Both the position numbers and the translations under genes were made by a program. DNA of 63,847 nucleotides, counting the filler, from Reticulomyxa filosa (lineage: Eukaryota; Protista; Foraminifera): the NCBI GenBank assembly GCA_000512085.1. It is 17 parts of 17 records of this genome, joined end to end, with 100 filler letters (N's around TTAATTAATTAA, not from the genome) between each part and the next. Parts side by side here need not be neighbours in the genome. Positions count along the whole stretch, not along the records: positions 23,018 to 44,092 come from ASPP01028422.1; 16 more parts are not named here. One strand, 5' to 3'. Within the stretch, counting starts at the first letter, position 1. Each line of letters begins with the position of its first letter. Under the pieces are notes generated by a model. It saw only the letters and a list, made by a program, of their open reading frames with translations. It had not been told where the DNA came from and ran no database searches. Below, in pieces: positions 23,018 through 44,050 of this stretch.

Positions 23018-23704
23018 AAACAATACAGATGGGAAAATCGACAAGAATATGCGAAATTGCTTGAAGAGTATCATTTGAATGAGTTCAACTCCCAAATCGA
23101 TGCAATTCGACAAGGGCTGGCCACCGTTGTTCCTATTGCATTTCTGCCATTATTTTCATGGCGGGAATTGGAATTAATGGTTTGTAGCGAACATGACATT
23201 GACTTGGAGTTGCTGAAAGACAACACTACGTACAAGTCTGGTGTTAGTGCTTCCGATAGGCATGTTCAATATTTCTGGAGCATTTTGCAGGAATTTTCCA
23301 CACAACAACGCCATGATTTTTTACGGTTTGTCTGGGGACAAAGTCGACTTCCTGCTCGTGGTAAGGACTTTCTTCAGAAATTCGAGATCCAAACCGCAAT
23401 TAGGGATGGTGATAATGCTTTACCCGTCAGCCGTTATGTCCCTCTTTTTTCTCCATCTGTAACATCTTTTTACATCACAATAAATGTAAATTAAACCTAT
23501 TTTCAGCTCTCGATTTTTGATAAATCAATTACTACAACAACTATTTAAAAAAAATTTGTTATAGACACATGCTTCTTTTCTCTCGAGTTACCAAGATATT
23601 CATCCAAAGAAATCATGAAAAAAAAACTATTGTATGCGATATCGAATTGCCATGCAATTGACGCAGATTTCTTGGAACGAAATGTTAATTGGGAAGAAAA
23701 TTAA
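23018..23704 (+). CDS. HECT E3 ubiquitin ligase (HERC1/2-like), C-terminal part
   Basis: [11 protein letters not shown]...[12 protein letters not shown]...FWSILQEFS...[12 protein letters not shown]...LPVS|[36 protein letters not shown]. The catalytic Cys (HTCF) is restored by intron 23433-23564. Confidence 0.95.
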
Positions 23705-25479: not shown

Positions 25480-28400
25480 ATGGCAGAAGAAGATGGAAGG
25501 AAAGAAATTAAAGATTTTTTACAAGTATTGAGAGAACACTTTAGGGAACAAGTCTTTACGTACTTGTTTGACAAGTTAGCCTGCGACGATATGGAAAGTG
25601 TTCTACATATATCGGCTGAAAGATGGAGGGAGCTATTCAAGGAAACACAATTGCCTGAAGGCCAACAGCCAAAACTATTAAAAAAATTGAACGAAAAGCG
25701 CAAAGAAAGTAGCCTGCCACCACTTGACATCAATACTGTTGGAGGAAACGCTGAGAAAGCAGAGTTAAACAATGTATAGAAAAAAAATGTCGAGTCATTT
25801 CCATTTCAAACTAAACAAAACAAAAAAAAATCAAAGTCCACTAAAATCTTCCGAAACAAATTCTGAACGCAGTGATATACTCACTGGACTAGATGCCAAA
25901 GATGACAAAGATATCAAAGAGTCCGTCCAAAAAAAAGCAGAAAATGAGAAAGAATCTGCCCCAAAAGATGTAGAAATGGAAAAACAGTCTACTCCAAAAA
26001 AAGATAAAATTAAGGACCAAGGCAATGTAGAAAACAAGAAAAACGCCATTCAAGAGGACTCTAAAAATGAAAACGAAACCATCGAAAAAGAGATTGAGTT
26101 TGTAAAAATAGTAAGTGTTGATCCGACATCAAATACGATCAGTTTTAGCTTAAAGGTGGGTTGACATAATTACGCTAATGTTTTTTAATTTGCAAATTGA
26201 AAATGGAGCACTTTTTTTGGGTATTGTTGCGAAAATACGTTTACAGCACAACTCAAACGTAATTGTATCTCGAAAAGATATACAATGGAAGTCTTTGTCA
26301 CTGAGACAAGGTGAAGAAATCAAGTGCACATATACGCTGAACGAAAAGAAAAATGTTATAGTAGAAAATATAGAGTGGCCTCCGATGTACCAAGAACAGA
26401 TCACATTTGCTGACAAAACATTTTTTGCTTTTATGAAGCCCTACACCGAAACAAAAAAAGTTTTGTTTTGCTTTATAATTGGATTTTTTATATTTACTTG
26501 TGCTCATTGTATGTTGATGTTGTGAAGATAAGAGTAATATTTCCAATTGATACCGTGTCTGGAGTGACCAAATTACGTGAAGGGGATATATTATCTTTTC
26601 GTCTCCAATTCACACCACAAAAATGGATGCCTGTTGATGTAAAAATAGTAGAAAGAGCTGCCATGTATGCATACATCTTTCTCTCCGCATATATTACTTT
26701 TTTTTACTATTGTCGTTGTTTAACTTGAGTAGTCGTAAAATCAAAGATATCCCAGCCCCTCCAGCAATTAAAGATAAAGCAACAAGCTATGACGATATAA
26801 AGAAGTGGCTCGAAAATCCATCGCAAGGTATACATGTTTGTTTTTTTTGCTTGTGTTAGTTGAGAGTTACATTAATTCGGAGCGTGCTACGTTGGTTTGC
26901 ACAGAACAACCATCGTGGGAAAAGTGGCAAAACAAAGAGTTGTTGAAAATGGGCTCAACCTTGTTGAATCTGTTACAAGAAAGTCAATATAATGATGACA
27001 ATGAAAGCAAAATCGAGCAAGTGATATGGCAAAAGACGGCTATTCAATTCGAATTGATCAAAGAAGTGATTGTAAAGTGTATTGATGAGCCATGCCAAGT
27101 GCCGGATACGTTGTTTCATGTGTTATCTTCCTCAGGACAGAGCCAAGATGCGAAAGAAGATGAAAATGCAAAAAGACAGACTCTACAAACTCAAGTGAAA
27201 AAATGAAGAAATGGTAAAGTTACGCAAGCTCGTGGAAGAATTTCATGAAATGACAGAAGAAGAAAATCGCCAGCATTTGTATCAAAAGTGTGCCGATATT
27301 GTCCTTGAAGAAGAAAGCACAGTGTGTGAGGTTCAATTGGATTTTCCCATAACTGATAGAATTGCGAGGATTTATATTTATTGTCCCGAAACCACAACGG
27401 GCAAAAAAAAGCCAATCATTTTATTCAACCAAAGTATTTTTTTTTTTTTGAGTAGTCCTCAATAGGAAAAAAAAGGAAATATAAAAAATTAACAAAAATA
27501 CAAAAAAATTTTTCAGAGAAATGGAAGGAAGCACAATTGGTAAGCGATGACTTCTTATCTTTATACGTGATTGATCTGCCAGCACTAAAATACACTATTC
27601 ACATTAAACATCGAAATCTACGTACAATCATTGATATTGACACTCAAAAGTATGCCTATTTTGTCGAAATGAAAAAGCAAGACTATTGGCAAAAGGCCCA
27701 AAGTATGTATAATTTCGTCAAGGATAGATGGGTAGAAAATAGCTCTCTATCTCTGAATAACGTTGTGGTTCGTCACGTGATAGAAAACATTGTTGATGAC
27801 AAGTCATTTCAATTTGCACAGCAAGCCTTGTGCGACATAACCAAGGAACTCCAGAATCTCTCCAAAGAACTCAAAGATTTGTTTCTAAAAATGAAAGGCC
27901 AGCTTAACAATATTGATGCAGCTATTAAATTAGTTAAAAATATATGTTGCATATATACATATATAATCTTGGTTTTGTACATTTCGCCATATAAAATTTT
28001 CTAAAAACAGATTTATCAAATTACATTTGCGAGCGAACAGCTCAAAGGACAAAGGGAGCGGCTAAATCCATTGGAATTATTTTATTTAGCGAAATGCGTA
28101 GTAGCAACACCGAAGTGCAATATAATTGAAACAATAAGAAAAGAGTTTTGGAGTGACTTAGAACATAATAAACGAGCAGAGGGCATTCAACAGTTCATGT
28201 TAATTCCTTGTTTTAATCTTTTGGCAAGTGATAATACCATGCGAATACATGAAGAACTTTTGGAATATTTCAACTTCAAACATGTCAATAAAACATCACA
28301 AATGGCCATACGGTGCATAGAAATTATCGAAACAGATCTACAAATTCGACGTAATTTCAATATCAAACCGATATTATTTTCTGAGATGCATTTGATGCAA

Positions 28401-31400
28401 ATATTGCATTCTCAAAAGGATAATATTATGTCGGAAGAAATATTGGAGTCCTTATTGTCCAAAAAAGAACTTGTGACGGTCGAAACGTGGATTAAGTTGT
28501 GCACAACTCCAGACTCCAAATTTTCTAATGTCATTTGTAATTTGTACAAGTGCCATTTTAAAAAGTTTAGTTTATTTGTGGAGAAACTTGAAGCTATTGG
28601 GGCATTGAAAAACGAGCGCCTTTGCAAACTGTTATTGAGTATAATCAATGAAAAAGATTTTCAAGATGCACTGATTCAATCCAAGCAAGATTTGATTTCT
28701 TTTATACAGAAATATGATACTAGTATTTGGCAAAATTATGAGGACGTATTGCAAACTTTATATTGTTATATTGACAAAACAGATAAAATCCATGATGTCA
28801 ATACGATAATGACTACGTTTGATATGCTTTGGAAACATTGTCCATCTGAATCGCAATCTATTGAAAGGCAAGTTAATAATATTACTCAGCGATTGCTAAA
28901 ACGACTTGTAGCCGAAGAGAAATCGATTGAATTGTGGCTGCAACTATTTACGTATCAAACACAAGGAAAAAGACAACACATTTTGAAAGAACTCTTGTTG
29001 CAAAGTTTGAATGAATGGATAGACAACAAGATGATAGGTACAAGTATTGATTCACTTCAACAACTTGCGCAGCTGTTGTTATGTCCAAACTTTTGGACTC
29101 TCCCCAATGAATATCAAACCGCATTTTTGATCGAAATTGAAAAGCAACAGGAGATACTATCTCTGAGTAGCAAAAAATGGAATGAAAAGTCTCTGCAATC
29201 GATGAAAAAACTTTTGGAACAAACATTCGTTGATTCGAAGGTGTTGGACAAAATAGTTGAAATTGTTATAGATATTCCTGTGCAAATGGACTCCGATGTG
29301 AGTAAAGGAGACATAGATAAAGATAAGAATGTAATTGAGGTAAAAGAAGAAAATAACGATGAACGAACAGAAGACAATGAAAAAAAAGAAGAAGTATTTG
29401 TAGAAGAACCGCTTGAAGGAGAAGTGTTTGCAAAAGCGCTTACAGAAGAAGTAGTCATAAAAGAAGCGCCCATAGAAGAAGCGCCCATAGGAGAAGAAAA
29501 TGATAGTGAAAAAGACCATGAAGAAACAAAAGAAAAAGAAAAAGAAAGAAAAAGTAAATGAGGATCAATCGCGGTTGTTAATACATCATTTGGAGTATTG
29601 TTTTTTGTGTATACCATGGTTGTCGTTGATCCAATGTGAATTAAAGAAAGTGCCAAGATTGAACCAGCTACAAGAATTTATAAAGACGACACTCAATACA
29701 TTGTTTGAAATGGCTGACAATAAATCAGTTGCATTTTGTGTATGTGAATTTCTTGCGTGTGATCGTAACGAGTATAACATCCAAAGCAGCTGCAGATCTT
29801 TGTCGGAATGGAAAGACGATAACATGATTCAAAGCAAAGTCAATGCATTATTAGCTATGTTAACAAAGTACAAAAAATTTGTGCATCTGAAACAGTTATT
29901 CATAGCAGTGTTGACCAGTTATATGACATTTGATGATCTTTCTACACAATTACAAGAATTCAGTCACTTTTGTAATAATTGTAATTCAGAGTCATTTCCG
30001 AAAGCGAGCCAAAAATATCAGGATGAACAAAAAATATTTCAAAAAATGGAAGAACCAATGAGACAGTTAGCGAATCTGAAGGACAGTTGTGCATTTAAAA
30101 AGCTGTGGAATCTGTATCGGAAAGAAATGAAAGAACAAAAAAAATTGACATTCGAAACGAGTATGGACGAACTTTATAACCAAGTAAACAAAAGATGGAG
30201 GGAGTTGAGACAAACAATGGAAAAAGAATCATCATCTATGGAAGATTTGAAATGGTTTGAAGCAAGTGAGTTAAGTTTGGAATTACAGTTTTTATTTCCA
30301 AACTGGCCCCCGGAAAGAAGAGAGTCTGTGGCAAAGAGTATCGACGAAAAACGTGAAAAGATTAAACGATTAGAAAAAATGATAGTTCCCTGGGCAAAGC
30401 TGAAAGAAGCCACAGAAACTTTGAAAAAATATCATAAATCAAACCATACAATAAAAAACGATAATAATTGGAATCGTTTTGTCAAATCATTGGAGAACAG
30501 CTCTAAGGTACTTAAAGAACAAGAACCATCGATTCAGCGCTTGTCTCAATGTTATGACGAGTGTGCAAGCTGTTTTGGAAATGAAGCTTTGCAATGTGTG
30601 GAATTGTTGGACTTGATTGTGAAATACGAAAAGACACTGATTGAACAATTGGCAACCAGCGACAACTTTGCAAACAAAGAGCATTTTGCAAACACCTTGG
30701 AGACATTAGACAATTGCAAGGACATTCGATTCCAGCAATTAGTAAGCGCACTGCGTGCAGTCAATGGAAATATTCAGGAATACATTTGGGATGCCAATTT
30801 ACAAGAGACAAGTCAAGTCGCAAGAGCGATTTTAGCAATTCATAGACGCGACAATGAATTCACTATCAGATTTAAAAAGTGCTGCGATGAGGATCTGGGT
30901 CGTATCTCTTTTCTCGTTGAAGAAGCAGGTCAAATGCAGGCTGTACAGAGCTTTAGTTTGTTAGAAAAAGCGCAGAAAATTGGCCAATGGAATTTTGCCG
31001 GATGTGATCAAGTATTACAAGTTAATTCGAATGTCATTGACAGCAATGAAGAGAAAAAACAGAGAAATGAATGGCTCGTCTTGCAAATTGGAGCAGATAA
31101 ACTCAATTATGATCAAATTGAACAAGCAATTGATCGTGTCTTGCTAGGATTTTCCAAAGAAAAGCAGTTAAAAGGAGTGGAGTCACTGATTAAGCAGTTT
31201 GGGACATGCAAAGATATTGAAACATTACGAGTGATGTTTTGGAGGAAAGGTGGTCGCCAAGCGACAGATAAATTGTACTTGTCCGTAAAAGAATCATTGG
31301 AAGTGTTTAAAAATCTACAAAGTGAATGGAAACAAAGATTAGAGGAGTGGCAAAGCGAATGCGTGAAATTGAGAGCTGAGTATCCAATATTGAATTACTT

Positions 31401-34400
31401 TACATTCAATGAAGTTCGTTTTCTTTCCAAGAAATTAAATGATATTGTAAGCTGTGATCCAAATCACCGAGAGATATTGTGTTCCAAGTTTATTTTACCG
31501 TTTTTACAACGTATTGACTCCCATCTCTCTAGCGCCTTGCCCTATGTGGAAAAATGGAAATTTGAAGCTGTGGAAGAGAATAAGATATTAATCCAGTTTG
31601 GGACTGTGTTTTCCGAAATTTGGATCAATTTGAAGAATCATAGTGATGTATATCGCAATACATCTTCATATGAGCTTGAATATAGTAAACCCAATTTAAT
31701 AATTCAGAATGCCAATACAATGCTCAGTGTTTTAGATTTGTTCAAATGTGTTGGAATCATTCCTCGTATCGAACATATTTTGATATGCAAAGAAAACACG
31801 ACGGAAGAGGAAATTGAATGTTTATTGTTTCGGGCAATCACTTCAGCCAACCGAATCCACGAGGAACGAGTAAACTTGCACTCTCCATTGTATTGTTTAA
31901 TGTGGCCAGAAATGTTGCCACTTGAAACATTAGAGCGAGTAACCAAATTGTTTCATACTCTGCTGCTGAGTGGAGAAGCATTGGATAAACTTAAAAAAAT
32001 TCCGTATCTATTGGTTGTTATGTCGACCTCGCCCAATAGCATGCTGTCTCAAAAATTGAACCGTTTTCGCTTGTCTCAACGTATTGGCATGAACGACCAG
32101 ACTCGAAATCTGTTAATTCAGCAATTGTATGGTAAGGATTTGGAAACATTTGCTTCACAAATCCCTCAGCCAATCGCAATAGCAACAACAAGCCATTTGT
32201 GCAATTGTACGTTTCTGATGAAATTGGCATGGGAAAGAGCTTCAAAATTGAACAAGATATTGCATCAATTCGAGAGGTCAATTCAAAGATACAAGCCGTG
32301 CGTGTTGCATTCAACAGCAGTGATATAGATTGGAAAAGTATAATGGAAGGATTTTGGAGATACCATCCTTGTACAAATGAAGAGCAAGTACAAGAGAATC
32401 TAATTGACATTGAAAAAAAAATGTACTAAACTAAATTATCAGGCCGATAACCTTGTCATATATCATTTGGATATTTCCTCTTGTGTTTTGACTTCGATGA
32501 ATACGTTTTTATTTGAGCTTCTTTTTTTGCAACATATCAACACGACATTGAATGTATGGGAATCACAATGTTTCCATGTCAATGCAAACATGGCCTTTTT
32601 AATTGAACTGCCTTTTAAATTGAACGGCATCAAAAATGACTACCAAGAAATATTGCATACGATATTCTCTTTGCCAAGTCTTCCCATTGTTAAAGTTTCC
32701 AAAGACACCAACCCATATGTATTTGGCCCAGAAGCACAGTTTGCTATCAAATGGATGAAGGAATTCTTTGACGGAAACTTAAAGTTTGCAAAAAATATAT
32801 ATGTTTATCACATGAATGAATAAACAAATGAAACAATAGGTATGGAGACCCCAATATGCAACAAATTAGTGATTTGGAGTCCACGGAAATGATTCAAATC
32901 ATGCAAATAAATTGTCCAAAAATGATGCAAGCTTCTCACTTGCATCAAACTGCTTTCTACAAATATCTGCATAACCAATTTTCTCCCTTGTCTACTTCTG
33001 TTTTTTTACGAAACGAAGATATAGAAAGCCAGCGATGGCCTATTCGATTTAAAAACGAAGTTACCAAGTCTGTTATTGAAATGAGCACGGATCTTTTCAG
33101 TCGATTCAACCAAAGAGGGCGCGTATACAGCAAAAAGAGTCTCGAAGAGAGTACAGGAAAGGATAAGTTTTACCTGTGCAAAAAATGGAAGCGCGCCAAC
33201 CATTTTTTATACTTGGTCAACCAAGATGATGTAGGTTTGTCAAATTTGTTGAATTTTTTTAAATGAAAAGCATATACGTAAATTTGTGTATGTACACTAG
33301 TTTTTTACTCAATCCTTTTGCAAAAGGCACGATTTCCATGCTCATCAACGACACAGCATCTATACCTCCACCTTGTTTGCAAGCACTTCGAGATTTGGAT
33401 TTTACACTCCTGAGCTGGAACGAAGAAATGAAACTTCGAAATGATGCGATTGGAACCGAATGGAAGGTCTTTCAATTTTTCTGTTTGTTTGTTATTTTAA
33501 ATAACAACTGAGGGGCTATATATATGTACAAATATATGTTTATATCACTTACATCTTAAAAAAAATGAATGCAACAAAAAAAAAAAAATAAATAAAGAAA
33601 AAAACGAAAGATATGCCGAAGATAGCTGCAGAAATTGAAGAAAAAGAAAAAAGAATCGAGTTATTGTTTCGCGTTGTTGGTACAAAAGAAACATTAAAAG
33701 CAAACATCAAAATGAAGCTCTGGGGAAAAGATTTCAAGCCAAGAGAACAAACTGAAACAAAGGAACAAATTGATGCAAACAAGCAAACTAAAACAAAAGA
33801 ACTGGAGGGAGAGTTCCAACATTATGTATTAACTTATGACAATATATTGAAAATGATTGCAATATATTTGAGGATACAATCCAATACGCCGATTATTTTA
33901 ATGGGAGAAACGGGCTGTGGAAAGACATCACTGATCAAGTATTTGGCCAAAGTAGCCAATGTTTCTTTGCAAGCTATTGATGTCCATGGCGGATTTGGAA
34001 GACATGATCTTCGGAACATTGTCAAAGCATGCGTAAATAAATGGGAGGAGGACGGAAAAAGGATTGCAATGGAAGAGGAAGAGGAAAGGAAAAAGAAAAT
34101 GATTGAGGAAGAAAAGAAAGAGAATGAGGAAAGAAATAGAAAAAAGAGGGAAGAAGAAGAGAACATGAATGAAAACGATAAGAAAAAAATGGAAAAAATG
34201 AAGAAAAATATTGAAGAAATGAAAAAGAGACAGAATGAGAGAGATCGGGAACAATGGATATTTTTAGATGAAATCAATACGTCTCCAGATATTGGTTGGT
34301 TGAACGAATTAGTGTGTAACCATACGTTGGATGGAGTGAAAATACCAGAAGGCATTAAAGTCATTGCTGCATGCAATCCATATCGAAAACGTAAATTGAG

Positions 34401-37400
34401 TGACGAAGAAGATGAATTGCTTGCAAACGATGCATTGAGCAAATACGTATACCGAGTACATCCATTGTGTGAAACCATGAAGGAGTATGTATGGTCATTT
34501 GGAAGATTGTCCAAGCCAGATGAAAAACAATATATTGAAGAAATGGTGAAACAAGTGAAACGTGAGCTTCCATCTACACTACATATAGAGTTTGAAGCGT
34601 GGAAAGATGAAATTTCAAAAAAGATTGCGACAGCTCAAAATTTTTTACTCGAAAATTTGAAAGATAAAGCCATTGTTTCATTACGAGATGTGTCAAGATG
34701 TTTGAAAATATTTGTATGGTTGATGAAACAGTGTTTTATATTGAATAATCATAACTCTATTCCTTGGATTTCTCGGAGTTTGAACATTGCCATTGGGTTA
34801 TGTTATTACTTTCGATTAAATATTGATGAAAGACAAAAATTGAGTAAAAATTTTTCCACAGATAATTTATTTTCCAAATCCTTGGAGCAAGAAGTGGACA
34901 GGTTGTGCAAATCGTTTTTAATTCCTGGAGGTGTTGCATTAAATCAAGGATTAAAAGAAAACTTGTTCATTTTATTCGTGTCGATTATCACAACCACTCC
35001 AATTGTTTTGGTGGGCAAACCAGGCACCTCAAAGACTCTATCTTTTCAAATTGTTCGTGACAACCTTTCTCACAATAAAACAGAGTTTGGAAAAAAATTA
35101 AGTCAAAATAATGTACCTTTCGCCGTTAAACCAATTCATACTATTGCATTCCAATGCACTCGTGATAGCAAACCACAGGGGATTAAAGAGCGATGGGATC
35201 AAGCAATGCGTCACAGTGAGAATAATCAAATCAAGCCAATATTGTTACTCGATGAAATTGGATTGGCTGAGCATTCAAAGCATTCCCCATTAAAGATATT
35301 ACATCAACTTTTGGAAGATCCAAAGATATCTTTTGTTGGGATTTCCAATTGGCCTTTAGATGCCGCGAAGATGAATCGAGTGGTTATGCATCAAATACCA
35401 TCAATGACACCACAAGAGTTAAAAAATACTGGCTTGGAAATGATAAGACACTATCGAGAGAATTTAAGGGTACATGGGGACGAGCTAAAAAACGAATGGT
35501 TAGAAGAGGAAATCGAAAATATTGCCAAAGTTTATGACCGAGTAATCAACACACCCAAAGCATTTGAACCAAAGAATAAAAAAAACTTTTTTGGAGCCCG
35601 TGACTTCTATTCTCTAATCCGATATCAACTCCAAAGTCCTTCTTACCGTGTATCGTTTGAAGGATTTATGAGAAACTTTGGAGGCATTCCAAGAGATGAC
35701 CTGCTCAAAAATTTAGGAGACATTTTCCACAATGTGTTAGGAATTAGCAAAGAAGATATTCTCAAAAAAATGAGTAAATTCACGCCAATGGATTGTGTCC
35801 AACAAAATCTTTTGGACATTCGAACGAATAGATCCAAATTACTCGGAGACAATTATATTGTAAGCCGTCATTGTATGGTTATCAGTGAATCAGAGCATTC
35901 TTGGCAAGTTTTGTTGGAAATGGAATCTTAAGATATGACGACGTGTTTTTATTTAAAAGCAGTTTTGCACATGACCAAAGTTCGAGCATTTCGGATTACG
36001 AACATTTGAACAAAGTCATTAACTGTATGGATACTGGAAAGAGAGTCATTTTGTACAAGTTGGATTCAATTTATGAAAGTTTATATGATATGCTTAACCA
36101 AAGATATCAAAAAAAGCCCTCTGGTAAAAACAGTTTAAAAAATGCCTTTTTCTCATCTTTTAATCATACTATACGCAGAGAACAAAAATATAAGATAAAA
36201 AATAAATAGGAAATGTATATTGCCGAGTTGCTCTGGGAAGTGAGAGTAAAGATTGTTATGTGAAAGATGAATTCAAATGCATAGTGATTGTGCACAAGGA
36301 CACAGCATACGCACCGGAAATGCCAGTTGCATTTTTAAACCGCTTTGAGAAACAGTTGATATCCTATCGCACATCACTACCCTCTGAAACGGAGTCGTGG
36401 ATATCAAAAATAGAAGAGCGGTTAACTCAAGCGTTTAAATTTTCCAAACGATTAGGGAAATTGTTTTGTGGATTCAATAACGATACCATACCTTCGGCAT
36501 TGTCTAGCATTTTAGTACAAAGAAAAGAAGAAGAGTTAAACAATATTGAACTTGATGAAACAACTATAAATGCAGTTATGAATTTATTTAAACCTTTGTG
36601 CTGTCCTGAGATCATCATCGAAATTGCCATTGATCAAAAGGAAAAATTTGACTACAAAAAAGTTGGGCAGGAAGAATTCCCTTCCTTTAGAAAGATTATT
36701 GACTTGCAACTTATGAAGTCGAACAAACAAATGGCAATAATACTTACTGGAGATTTTGAGTGTAATTTACCAGAAGAGTGGAATAACGCAACAAAAAAAG
36801 TAGAGTCCTTCAAAAAATCGAGTGACTTTGAACAAGTCATTCATCATTTCTTCAGTCCAAACAACACAAGCCAAGATCTATTGATTTTGCAGTACGTGCA
36901 CGACTCGAAAAATTTCGGCCACTTTATGCACATCAAACATACCCTGGAACATGCACATCATCGCTACTATTGTTACAAACAAGAAGAGGAAGAAAAAAAA
37001 GAAACAGAACAGAGATTGGTTGTTTTGCTCGTGCATATTAAACCACCAATTTTCAAAAACCCTTTCCCACTAATTTTCTCGAGAAAATGGAACTTTACAT
37101 ATGTTGATAACTTAAGTTCGATCGGGCTCACACAATTGAAAACGCTGCTTTCACAAACCATGCCAGATGTGCTTGAAAGTGATACATGTAATAATCGCTT
37201 AAATGACGCGATTCGGCGAGCATTTGCACGACTCCAGTTCCCTGTCCATAAAAATGAAGGTGGTGATATACAAAAACTATCTATTTTATTTAACGAATCG
37301 AATGAAACTAAGAAATGCCGAGAAGAAATCGTTTTAAAATTAAAGCAAATATTTCAAGAAAAAGGCGTAGTATCCGAACCCATTGTATGCATTTTAAATA

Positions 37401-40400
37401 AAGACGAAATCAAAAATCCCGGCAACGTGGATACGTTATCACTAGGCTGCTCTTTTTTTAAGAGATATGAAAATATTATCGGCAGATTGTTGGTCATGGC
37501 TTGTACGAATATTTTGTTGGTGTTTTATGAAAATTGTTATTTCCAAGTTAATTCACTTGTATTTTAATGCAATCATAAGTATAACGAAAATTTGTACAAT
37601 GTACTTTAAAAAAAGGTGTTTTTTGATGCCGTTAAAAAAAATGATGACCATTTGGCGCAATTGTTTGTGGAAGTCATAAAAGATGAATCAATACTATCAA
37701 TTCCTCGCTTAAGAGAGGTAATGCAAAGATTAATGGGCGTTGAACCAGATCTACATGCGGTCAGTGTCCAATACAAGGCCATGTTCCCATGGAGCCACAT
37801 ATTTCACAATTGGTGCCACTCCAAGTTGGTCAATATTGTTGCCCACAATGCCACAACCGAAAAATTCAATACAATTAACAATGAAAAGGAGAACAAAAAT
37901 GAAAATAAAGAAGAAAATGGATATGAATATGACCAGGAAAAAGAAACTAAGATACAATTAGAAAGCCACTGCAAAATAATCCGAACTTTCAAGTTATTGA
38001 GAGCATCAATGAGTGGAAGTAGAAAAGCGTTCAATCTTTTGAATCGATGCAATGCCGAACATTGTCGATTGTATTTTAAGGATATCATTGCAGCTAAATA
38101 CAATTTGAATGAACACGACAAAGCTGAAGTCATTACAGACGTTATGTTCTCTATGATTTCTATGTACGATTGCAATGTGTCCATAGCGGTGATTGAATCT
38201 ATTTTATATTTTTTGCCAGATTTTTTTGCTAAGTATGTAAACTTATTGAAGCTCTGCGAAGACAATAGTATCGTTTTGGAATTGCATACGTTATTGGACA
38301 ATAAGAGTGAGAGTTCCAGATTAAGTGATTCCATTTGCTTGTTGCTGAAATATTTTATTTCCTTTTCATCTGGTTCGATCTTTGCTTTGTTTTTTCCTCA
38401 TAAAGGCTCTTCGTAATCTTTACTCTTGTTTTTGAATACGTGTCAACTTTTTTTTTTGCAGAGAATAATTGGCATGACGTTATCAGAAATTTGAAAGCAG
38501 TAGAAAATGCAATTCCAATAGTTCTACAATTTGCAACAGATTGTTATGGCAATAGCAAAGAATATAAGAAAATATTATCCATGTGTCGTCGAGCACAAAT
38601 CCAAATCCTTGGAGTGAAACATTTTGGGAAGCAAGTGATTGACCAAACAGATCTGAATAACGTGTTGTCTCGTGCCATGTCGTTCAGCCAACCGTCGTCC
38701 GATAATGACAAGACCACTATACCTAAAATTTTGGCTTGTGTGCTCAAGGAAGGAAATCTTGCTATGAACAAACGTCCTCATTATATTCGGGATATGTTAG
38801 CGATAGTGAGACACATTGAAAAACTTGACACTCCAGACAAACAAGAAATATATCGTTCTGTACTACTCGAGTTTTTTGATAATTCACAAGACTTGGTGTC
38901 AGATGCAAAAAATGAAAGCAACCAGATCCGTTTGCAAATTCTTGAAGAGTTGGTTCAAAATCAATGGGAAAATAAGACATTTGAGTTAGCTTCTCATGAA
39001 GCTGTGTTATTAAATCGCGTATTGGAACGTATTTATATAGATGTGCCAAATCTCAAGTACAATGGCCCAAACCAAACTATTGACGATGTGTCAAATTTGA
39101 AGGCAAAGTTGTTTCAATGCATTAATTCCATTCTGTCGATTACTAAAACACTTATAATATCACAAATGAAGGACAATCAAGAGTTAAATGTGGTAATGTG
39201 GCAAGCGTCTCAACTGTTAACGCATTTTAACCAAACAAACGAACGTTACCAACATAGTTTGCATATATGGTTTTTGAAGGAATTTTATGTTGCCAAGGGC
39301 ATAAATTGGACAAAAACGTTCTTTACAAACGAGGCAATATGTGCAAAGTATCCAGTATTTTCTCATCCACAAATGAGTGATGTATTTTCTGTATTGAAAT
39401 ATCAATCGCCTGATATCCTTCCTGCAGATCTGTTTATTAATATTTACGGAGATAAGTACGTCAAATTTAGAAATGAACTTTTGCAGGGAATTAAATCGGG
39501 TGATATAGATCCACAGTATAATGGAAATAAAAGTGATTTCATTTTATTGTTAGCTGCTGCTCTCTCTTTGCCTAATCTCTGTGATACTTTCAGCCCAAAT
39601 TTTGAAAGTAAGAGACTCTACAGTTTTTTCTCTCTTCCAGTAGTATACGTTGCAAATTTTTGGCGCACACACTACAAAAATAGAAGTAAGAGATTATTTG
39701 ATGCGGTGCAACGTTTTAAAATCCGACGTTGAACAGAATTTTGTTAAAGTGTTACTTAGTGAGAAACTCCCTTCAACTGCCTCTAGTTTGAGGTTGACCT
39801 GGAACACTGCTTCTGACAGTTTCATTCCAAGATTGTGTTTCCATTTTCTGGGAGTACTCCAAATTATGAACAGTTACGTTCCTTTTCTTTTTGAAACGAT
39901 TTGCACAATAATCTATCAATATTTCTCCCCTCTCCTCAAAAAAAAGAAAACCCATTCCGAGCATTGATTATAAATCCCAAAATATATGTAAATGGTCATC
40001 TTCCAACAATGCCAGAAAATTTGTTGATAAGCATGATTCGTGTGATGAAAAGCTCAGGACAAGACGGAGATAGTTTTACGGTTCGCTATTGTCCAAACAT
40101 GCATCCGTTCATCATCAGCAAATGTGGACATCCAACAGAGAAGGTAATCTGTGCAATGGATGGATGCGGCCAGGAAATTGGCAACACAACTCATAGAAAA
40201 GCAAGTACTGGATTGAAGCAATTAGAAATACCCAAAGGATATGTCTTAGATGGATCAGATGAAGAGTTATCAATAGGTGATTCATTTTGGAGGTATGAAG
40301 AAATGATAGAAGTAAGGAAAATCAATGAAGTGGCCTGTACGTTGATGCGCTTGTTAATACACTTGTCACTATTGATCAGAAATGCGGCCGTTGTAGGGGG

Positions 40401-42374
40401 ATGCAAGCAACTCCAAGAATTGTTGCACAAAAAAGATGCAACAGAAGTGACCAAGTTTTTGCAGAAACAAGCAATTGGATATTTTCGATTGTTAGGAAAA
40501 ATCACTAGCCTAAACGATGAACTTTTATCTGTGGCATTGCACCAAATATTGGATGGCTTGCCACAAACATTCAATGAGTGGTATCCAAATGGATTAAATG
40601 GAACAGATCTTACCACCACATATGAATTTGAAAAGAAATTTAATAGGGAGTACAATGGATTTTTTGGACAAATCCAAAGATTCAATGAAGTGAACAGTCG
40701 TAATAAAATAACTGTGAACGAAGACAAGGCTCTGAAAATGATCTCTGAAATTGAGGAAATAAGACAAGTTGATGAACTCTATCAAAAATATATTCCACAT
40801 TTATTTTTGACCATCCATAACGTAACATTTGATGACTTAGCTCAAAGGTTTAAAACAGAACCTTCACTGCAAAGTAAATACCCACTACTGTATTACCTGA
40901 TGAGCGCCAAAGATGAAATTTGGTGTGTGAGATATTTGCCTGTTATTGGGCAATGGATGAAACACGTATATTTTCACTATTCAAAACGAATTACACAACA
41001 AGGATGCCAAAAAAAGACTATTTCTCAAGCGCTTGAAGAGTGGAAGCAAAATGGATATGGAAGTGAAGTGGAGTCCTACCAAAAATTATGGAGTGGCTTC
41101 AAAACCTGTTGGAACACATTGGCAAATCAAAAAGTGAACAATGGCTGTAAATCATTTGTTATTCCAAAATTACATGACGACAATACAACTAGTTTGGAGT
41201 TTTCCACTGCACGAAATAATGAAAATGGATTGATTATTGTAAAAATCATTGAACTGTTACAAGATACACACAATGCATTTTTAGAACGTGTATTGCTGGG
41301 GCCTGAAAAGTATGCAGATAATGAAGAAAAATATGGAAGAGATAACGAAGAGAAATATGATATAAAGAATGGTGACAATAAACAGGTACAAGAGATTATG
41401 GGCGAGAATAAGTCTCTGTTTCACATTCACGAAAATGATGTCATATGTTTGGACAAAGATCAAGTGACCGAAATTATTCGCCAGTGGAGCCTTCCCTCAT
41501 TAGAATATGGAGCCATTAATCAAACTCGAAACAACGTTTTGGATTTAAGTGCCATTGAAAATGAAATTTTTTATCGATTTATTAAAAACCGCCAAATCTT
41601 GGAAATTAGTATCCCTTCCCTTCAGTTTTCCAATCAATTAAACATTAAAAATTGTGTGGAAATTATCGAGGAAAACAACAAAGAGCTTAAAAAAGAGCCA
41701 AAAGATCAACCGTTATTGAAGAATGTTGTTTCTTCGTTGAAATCACAAAGTGAAATGCAAAGGGCTTTGGAAATATTGAATGAAGTCATTGTCTTTGTTT
41801 CTCAAAATATCAAGATCATTAACTTGTTAAGTCGCAAACAAATAAAATTGCTCTTATTTCTTAATGTTCAATGCTTTTTATACATAGAGATAATCGCTTC
41901 GTGGAATTGCTTGAACAAATGTCGTTTGATGAGAAAAATTGCAAACTGTTTATGGTGAATTCGGAAGAACAAAAAGATTTCATATTGTGCAGGCATATGT
42001 GTAATTTATGGAGACTTTTAAACAATGCCGTGCAATTAGAGTTTGTTAATCAAAGTACAATTGACAATTATGTTTTGGACATTTACAAAGTCCCCTTGAC
42101 AGAATCATTGAAACAAGAACTTGAAGTAATGGTAAAAAAGACACCTTTGGGAACAATAAAGGAAATTTTAGACGCTTGGAGAGAGGTTGTGCAAAGAGAA
42201 GGAGAAAACATGAGAGATTTGGACAAGAAAGAACCTTTCAGGAGCTGGTTGGATAATATCGTATTTTTTGACAACGAGTTGGAATTATTTCCAAAAGAAT
42301 CACTTACTTGGGAGTACTGTGCTGCTGGTTATGCCTTTCTCCACGAGCTATTCAAACGCACCTCAGGCAATTGA
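25480..42374 (+). CDS. Giant RNF213/mysterin-like AAA+ ATPase-E3 ligase with RZ finger (~5,000+ aa, many short introns)
   Basis: RNF213-type motifs in the expected order: SDEIGMGKSF, YHLDIS, YVLTYDNILKM, IILMGETGCGKT, VHGG, FLDEINT, IAACNPYR, YVYRVHPL, VSLRDVSR, LKENLF, LVGKPGTSKTLS, LLDEIGLAEHSKHSPLKILHQLLE, FVGISNWPLDAAKMNR, FFGARDFYSLI, LYDMLNQRY, YCRVALGS, FLNRFEKQ. RZ finger CPNMHPFIISKCGHPTEKVICAMDGCGQEIGNTTH at 40090-40194. ORF breaks coincide with GT..AG introns or homopolymer indels. Joining the 5'-most exons to the rest is inferred. Confidence 0.9.
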
Positions 42375-43362
42375 CATGTTATACTTTTGTTCAAGTAATT
42401 TTGTTCATTCCGCTTTTGTGGATAAAATGAGATTAGTTTTGTTAATAAGATTGATAAATTTTTTAATTCATCACGTTTTTTCTCAATGTATCGTTCATAT
42501 GTACGAACATATCCAAACTTATTCCATTTTTCTTATTCATTACTTAAAAGTATTTGTGCTTCATACTATCAGACTTCTCAAAAGAGTTTGAGATCCTTCA
42601 AGCCATAAAAAGTGAAGGCATAAATCGTCGAATGTATTGTTTATTTAAAAAGTTCTCATTTCGCTATCTTTTAATTGTAAAGGAAGTTGAGTTTTTGAAG
42701 CTGCATTTAGTGGCTTTGGTCGTACCTGTGGTAATATAAAAATATTAACAGAAACAATGCATTTTAAGGCAAAAGTATAAATAATTTAGCGAAAGTGATT
42801 GCAACGGCAATTAAGTTATTTGTTTTTGATTTTTTTCTAAATGATACATCCCATCTCTTTGACTTGCACAAAATGTAACACGAAAATGTTGCTCTATGAG
42901 CGGTTTTTCAATAAGAAACAAGTTAATTAAATCAAAGAATAAAATGAAAAAGACAACAAAACAAGAAGAAACGAGAGAAAGTGATAAGTTGGTAGAAAAA
43001 TTTTGGAAAAAAGGGATTTCAAGATGCACTTGAGCCTTGTCCTACAAAAGGCTAATTAGGGAAAATACTTATAAAGTAGTTTGATAGTGTTCTCACTTTT
43101 TAAATTACTCCAGATTAGTTGTTTTATAAAAAATTTGAAAACGTCCAAAAATTTTTACCATAAATTACTTTTAAATGAATAGCCGATGGTGTGAAAAAAG
43201 TATTGCTCTGTTCAAAAATGATATCACTTTGCCAAAGATGTGTTTTATTTAAGTTGTTTTGAATTTTTAATAGTTATCTATATCTTGAAAAAAAATTTTT
43301 CAGTATTAATAATGACGTATGCTGAAGATTTTAATTTAACGGCAAACCAAGTCTATCAAATG

Positions 43363-44050
43363 CTATTTTTTTTGTAAATTTTTATGGAAAAACTGAATGA
43401 GCCCTCTTTTGCCGTTATGCCTCCAATGTTCGTCTGTTTTGTCCAATTGAACAGCCGTTTCTTCAGGTACTCCAATGACAGCATCCTAACCAATTCATTA
43501 AAACAAATTTTTTGGAGTGTACAAGTAAAGAGATGGATAATAAACATAGCAAGACAAACCGATTTCATTGTCCTCAATAAGACAAAGCTGGTAGGAAAAT
43601 AATCGACAACATCTTTTAAAGGAGTAGATGGCTTCCATTTTCGGCACGAAACAACCTTAATTAGCATTTGATGATAAGATAGTTTTTGAAGGAGAAAAAT
43701 GAATAGATATATACACATATATATGTTATATAAGATGATGATAAAAGCAAACTCTTCGATAGTTGGCATCGCCTTTAATAAAGGTCAAAGCATCCTTTTG
43801 AAAGAGTTGATAGCAGAGAAGGCCAGTTTCGCAAGTAGTCATTTGATTGAACATGAGCGCAGTGTTCCAGAAATGTGACTCGACAACCTCAATCAAATGA
43901 GCACTCAAATAATGGCTAATTCGGTCATAAAACTCTTTCAGCTCCGAATGGCGGGAGGTTTGAATAAACAAATGACCGACATGAAGATCTACATCTTCCC
44001 TTGTCACATCTGAAACATAGGTTGGATACAACTTCACATGCAAGTATATC
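43363..44050 (-). CDS. ARMT1-like (DUF89) damage-control phosphatase, 3' part
   Basis: HVKLYPTYVSDVT, HFWNT, FIKGDANYRR, LLRTMKS|DAVIGV and HWRHNGKRGLIQF match the DUF89 motifs (FVSD, KGDxNYR, LRTLKS, WxxxGxxGxIQF). Confidence 0.88.

Follow-up and report, generated by a model that had tools for sequence, protein, structure and literature searches.

The window, a 63,847-nucleotide stretch of Reticulomyxa filosa DNA made up of 17 parts joined with filler, includes at positions 23018–44092 the 21,075 bp contig part ASPP01028422.1, on which an RNF213/mysterin-like gene extends along the plus strand from a start codon (ATG) at 25480 to a last stop at 42374. A HECT E3 ligase gene, represented by its 3′ end (23018–23704, +), lies 1.8 kb upstream, and a convergent gene fragment encoding an ARMT1-like damage-control phosphatase domain is found at 43356–44043 (−). 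Public annotation cuts the RNF213-like locus into five models, with the 1200-aa model ETO05186.1, named ‘viral A-type inclusion protein’, covering 25480–29561 and matching exon 3 at 100% in an exhaustive sequence search. The intron at 26156–26246 is taken as coding in ETO05186.1, resulting in the loss from the public model of a hairpin that forms strands 1–2 of the first of two barrels described below.

Despite this division, the splice phases connect the 5′ exons to the body of the gene through short introns, and 25480–42374 is very probably one spliced gene, as a sequence-only reading of the window had proposed for the N-terminal exons; we infer co-transcription from conserved introns, purifying selection, and the collinearity of the N-terminal module with the ligase body in paralogs. 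The frame is broken near 27199, 29550, 32160, and 32420, with all four of the breaks examined lying in A-rich runs and none common to the paralogs L004 and L007, a distribution that fits homopolymer sequencing errors. It is possible that the window copy is a pseudogene. Searches of this gene were performed exon by exon or via database proteins.

The body of the gene (all features on the plus strand) bears out the AAA+/RZ chassis of the sequence-only reading. A presumed stalk, so named by position, and the first AAA modules occupy 28005–33263, within which 29491–32325 yields no PDB sequence match, and are followed by a dynein-like AAA+ core at 33592–37564 that is matched by RNF213 structures and by Pfam AAA (E = 3e-67 for the AAA exon against RNF213 structures, and 1.4e-3 for the next exon). 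Two Walker A motifs (33904–33927 and 35014–35037) and two Walker B motifs (34261–34278 and 35245–35262) are intact. In the first active AAA module, Walker A is separated from Walker B by a charged helical insertion of about 65 residues (34060–34260) that is shorter in L004. The E3 module and C-terminal domain (37610–42374, ending at the last stop) include an exon with similarity to the RNF213 E3 core over about 450 residues (E = 4e-9) and an RZ-type zinc finger at 40087–40210 (PF20173, 38.7 bits against a cut-off of 27). The zinc ligands of this finger are kept, with four residues instead of two separating the last two zinc cysteines, and a Cys and a His align to the RNF213 pair whose catalytic roles have been described (PMC11549300). 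Neither a Pfam RING nor a CxxC was found in 36206–42371, and for this reason we describe the gene as RNF213-like rather than as having the full orthologue architecture; the RING present in the E3 module of animal RNF213 is dispensable for microbe ubiquitylation (PMC11549300).

The N-terminal arm is predicted to comprise a SAM domain, a flexible linker, and two tandem five-stranded OB barrels. Exon 1 (25480–25763, +) carries the start codon and the SAM-fold domain, at about residues 5–80, and ends at a phase-2 donor (25764) kept in L007, L009, and L011 and also used by the public model. Exon 2 (25837–26155, +; acceptor 25836 or 25872) encodes a charged low-complexity linker followed by strands 1–2 of barrel 1 (about 26099–26155), a hairpin conserved in L008–L011. 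A 91-nt phase-0 intron (26156–26246, +), identical in position in the close paralogs L009, L010, and L011, then interrupts barrel 1; a stronger-looking donor at 26111 was rejected, with the paralogs keeping the hairpin coding and splicing at the 26156 position. Exon 3 (26247–26459, +) completes barrel 1 with strands 3–5, which end at about 26378, and opens barrel 2 with strands 1–2, which begin at 26385, whilst exon 4 (26528–26664, +) supplies the cold-shock-like strands 3–5 of barrel 2, in which the RNP2 motif is absent. Barrel 2 is thus formed from 26385–26459 and 26528–26664, divided by a 68-nt phase-0 intron. Exons 5–8 (26733–27935, +) encode a helical segment and, in exons 7–8 (27199–27935), a beta-rich domain at the position of the RNF213 CBM20, for which no Pfam, PDB-profile, or ESM Atlas match was obtained. 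This beta-rich domain is conserved in the paralogs, including one that has no barrels (L007), with exon 8 among the faster-evolving exons (dN/dS 0.40–0.62).

The SAM domain was modelled in a paralog (P0058:1–153), with the family alignment as input to AlphaFold, giving five helices and five strands at a pLDDT of 86.4. The helical part resembles solved SAM domains with an rmsd of 1.9–2.5 Å over 63–71 residues and Z-scores of 7.8–8.1, the highest of which is moderate by the calibration of the tool, the top matches being Sla1 SHD2 (Z 8.1), LEAFY SAM (8.0), EphA5/SAMD5 (7.9), and ASK3 (7.8). The window SAM is tied to this model by a gap-free 64-aa alignment with the SAM of P0058 (25% identity, E = 3e-7), and the SAM-like N-terminus suggested earlier thereby gains a five-helix fold. 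The same five-helix bundle is found in Sla1 SHD2, LEAFY, EphA5/SAMD5, ASK3, and tankyrase; unlike these known families, the R. filosa SAM has no Pfam SAM match, with Pfam and PDB sequence searches of single exons and paralogs returning no significant SAM family profile match and a word-based search of exon 1 returning none at all. The RNA-binding SAMs of Smaug and Vts1 are not among the best 50 structural matches listed. In a tree of the family, the SAM sequences fall into at least three divergent groups.

AlphaFold modelling of barrel 2 of the window copy (P0001:250–330, the start of which differs by two residues from the corrected exon start) gives a small beta barrel of five or six strands with a pLDDT of 86.1, and three structure comparisons place it with the cold-shock domains (CSDs), in agreement with the cold-shock-like fold that had been suggested and with the five-stranded OB barrel of about 70 aa typical of canonical CSDs. 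The best eight structural matches are cold-shock domains of UNR/CSDE1 or CRHSP-24, the first with a moderate Z-score of 7.6 and an rmsd of 3.7 Å over 76 residues; Foldseek ranks CspA first at E = 2.9e-3, no Foldseek match having reached E = 0.001; and five of the six ESM Atlas matches are CSD clusters (TM 0.60–0.63). Barrel 1, modelled in P0058, matches OB folds generally (S1, EF-P, and UNR CSDs, Z 6.7–6.9), and a feature search of the ESM Atlas with exon 3 gives a weak S1 lead (0.83). The ‘weaker copy’ noticed upstream by the sequence-only reading does prove to be a second OB barrel, although a full five-stranded one with strands 1–2 in exon 2, and not a partial copy. Both peptides that this reading had quoted are present where it placed them, the SAM-like one in exon 1. 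An internal duplication of the barrels was considered and gains no support, with profile–profile comparison aligning only the shared overlap of the two. Pfam and PDB sequence searches with single exons gave no significant CSD match, so that the resemblance to both SAM and CSD lies below sequence significance, and Pfam CSD (PF00313) did not exceed its cut-off, with only sub-threshold OB hints (CSDE1, WCOB, BOF, and SHLD2; E = 0.02–0.1) in paralogs. Given these moderate scores, the fold assignments draw on the agreement in family of the matches across methods.

Canonical CSDs use exposed aromatics in the RNP1 ([YF]-G-F-I) and RNP2 ([YF]-[YF]-H) motifs for binding (PMC7825780), and neither motif is present in any of the 21 R. 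filosa family proteins. In the motif register of the sequence-only reading, which derives from sequence alignment rather than residue-level superposition, the two RNP1 aromatic positions of barrel 2 are aromatic or His in 5/11 and 3/11 sequences, Gly is never found at the RNP1 glycine position (0/11), and the RNP2 stacking positions are aromatic or His in 0/10, 2/10, and 0/10, whilst core positions are near-invariant. The element-by-element alignment with CspA put forward in that reading therefore holds for the hydrophobic core but not for the binding face, the impression of likeness stemming from the window copy being the most CspA-like barrel 2 of the family, with Phe in each of the two aromatic RNP1 positions. 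The net charge of barrel 2, at +2 to +5 in four paralogs, is mildly basic, and that of barrel 1 ranges from +2 to −3. The non-canonical CSDs of Unr retain the CSD fold without the motifs and serve as scaffolds, showing no RNA binding on their own (PMC7383231), and from their sequences the R. filosa barrels show that pattern of a fold kept and motifs lost. With both motifs missing and the base-stacking aromatics unconserved, the suggestion of ssRNA or ssDNA sensing is left unsupported, and nucleic-acid binding by the barrels appears less likely. RNA binding could nonetheless occur, since other OB folds, many of S1 type, bind RNA without RNP motifs.

Exhaustive and profile searches recovered 21 R. 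filosa proteins or fragments carrying the SAM-OB-OB module or part of it, corresponding to about 20 paralogs, their origin being checked by name for ten in one search and for twelve in the other, and by contig look-up or alignment for the rest. No credible relative in another organism emerged from exhaustive sequence and profile searches, most multi-stretch matches of the former being dropped as summed repeat artefacts (SpaA-like repeats), and a metagenome scan with exon 3 found no relative. The SAM, linker, both barrels, and exons 5–8 occur in identical order in L009–L011, with the SAM and barrel-1 hairpin of L009 within a single open frame; L004 is continuous between barrel 2 and the AAA core, L007 between the SAM and that core, and in the distant paralogs L001, L003, and L012 the module also runs into the same helical exons. 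Pairwise dN/dS values, which are noisy counts on short exons, are 0.26–0.43 for the barrels, 0.15–0.58 for the SAM, and 0.17–0.24 for two body exons, indicating from these codon comparisons that the barrels are under purifying selection, somewhat more relaxed than that on the two body exons. In the AAA core, 34231–34707 differs from L004:7738–8214 by a dS of only 0.17, against about 0.8 elsewhere in the pair, which hints at gene conversion between paralogs or at chimeric assembly.

About 110 nt separate the SAM exon of L007 from the tail of exon 7 downstream of it, and the linker, both barrels, and exons 5–6 are absent. L008, which has the same upstream neighbour, retains the linker and the barrel-1 hairpin, and the loss in L007 thus looks derived. 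The splice phase across the gap does not appear to close cleanly, so an assembly artefact or a pseudogene is possible, and this close paralog with the SAM but no barrels (L007:7129–7700) may represent a natural deletion, a pseudogene, or a misassembly.

We regard it as roughly an even call that the gene encodes a RING-less, RNF213-type defence ligase with a variable recognition or adaptor tip. This interpretation builds on the predicted folds, the exon order, the purifying selection, and the Walker and RZ residues, and we infer its functional steps from animal RNF213 (PMC11549300) and from what is generally known of SAM and OB domains. The N-terminal arm of RNF213 evolves fast, and RNF213 forms coats, possibly by oligomerising (PMC11549300). 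In R. filosa, the arm would be a fast-varying tip, removable if the barrel-less L007 is a guide, in which the SAM could allow copies or paralogs to associate with one another and so coat the target. The barrel pair would not read naked single-stranded nucleic acid in the manner of CspA but bind another ligand, most likely a partner protein or a glycan on a microbial surface. ATP turnover and RZ-finger transthiolation would then lead to ubiquitylation of the target, in the way known for animal RNF213 and intracellular microbes.

Binding of ssRNA or ssDNA by the barrels, whether viral, bacterial, or from damaged cellular RNA or ribosomes, so as to switch on or target the ligase in functional parallel to ZNFX1, is a tentative alternative that we consider rather unlikely. 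The structures that barrel 2 matches best are nearly all CSD or S1 domains that bind nucleic acids, this barrel is basic and in the window copy bears both RNP1 phenylalanines, tandem barrels could form a composite site, and the RNP motifs are dispensable to many S1-type folds; the loss of both motifs across all 21 proteins and of the stacking aromatics, the neutral to acidic barrel 1, the lack of a canonical CSD partner in the protein, and the existence of L007 without barrels all argue the other way. A bolder version, in which the tandem cold-shock-like cassette is kept or lost as a direct nucleic-acid sensor joined to a polymerising SAM, giving an RNA- or DNA-triggered ubiquitin defence independent of ZNFX1, is unlikely.

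That L007 has kept its SAM and body without the barrels would also suit barrels that are degenerate structural spacers without a ligand, with recognition residing in the downstream beta-rich or stalk region and only the SAM mattering at the tip. The limitation of barrel conservation to core residues and the greater variability of exon 8 are consistent with such spacers, yet purifying selection has kept both barrels in subfamilies that share about 25% identity, and we consider this explanation decidedly unlikely. It is very unlikely that the 5′ exons form a separate small SAM-OB-OB gene or that the window copy is a pseudogene: the five public models and the frame breaks could be read in this way, but the splice phases join via short introns, at least five paralogs share the identical order, the breaks are placed as homopolymer errors would be, and dN/dS is well below 1.

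The R. filosa ligase resembles several known systems in part. RNF213/mysterin (PDB 8S24 and 6TAX; PMC11549300) shares its giant size, a dynein-like AAA+ core that bears two Walker A/B pairs of the active type, an RZ finger with zinc ligands and catalytic Cys/His, a similar E3 core, and a faster-evolving N-terminal arm. In contrast to RNF213, the R. filosa ligase has no detected RING, its SAM and two OB barrels are undescribed for animal RNF213, about 20 paralogs bear the module, and in place of the CBM20 of RNF213 it has the beta-rich domain, a candidate counterpart by position. UNR/CSDE1 (PDB 2YTV, 6Y6M, and 6Y6E; PMC7383231) provides the best structural matches of barrel 2, and likewise joins its tandem barrels by a very short linker and has non-canonical CSDs that, as in R. 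filosa, lack the RNP1 and RNP2 motifs. However, the sequence similarity is non-significant (E = 0.19), no canonical CSD adjoins the R. filosa barrels, and these are fused to a ubiquitin ligase, whereas UNR is a translation regulator. ZNFX1 (bioRxiv 10.1101/2025.10.14.682297) is an RZ-finger RNA helicase E3 that assembles into polymers, and resembles the R. filosa protein in coupling an RZ-finger ligase to an NTPase; it differs in being an SF1 helicase rather than an AAA+ ring, and in having demonstrated RNA binding, which is putative in R. filosa.

How one ligase, RNF213, can recognise widely differing pathogens is still an open question, with the N-terminal arm its suspected receptor (PMC11549300). 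About 20 folded, variable, removable N-terminal cassettes on an RNF213 chassis suggest that the arm position accepts modular tips, and as small, expressible domains these cassettes are suited to probing tip binding and SAM-driven coat formation. They also add a family of non-canonical cold-shock-like domains missed by Pfam and publicly labelled ‘viral A-type inclusion protein’. Whilst the chassis is known, no open-access paper was found on RNF213 with cold-shock or OB domains, in Reticulomyxa or in Rhizaria, and the SAM-OB-OB tip and its foraminiferan expansion are without match in the literature searched.

Other paralogs of the family adjoin TPR and WD40 repeat genes (L006:750–5634 and L011:461–1336), an adjacency that may be chance, as such repeat genes appear abundant in the R. 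filosa genome. Homologous NACHT/WD40 genes with 48–69% identity (L007:661–5857, −, and L008:2046–7175, −) are each arranged head-to-head with an RNF213-like paralog, facing its SAM exon, the L007 gene also showing a weak RelA_SpoT match. The NACHT/WD40 and RNF213-like genes are probably one duplicated two-gene unit, and could be a sensor–effector pair.
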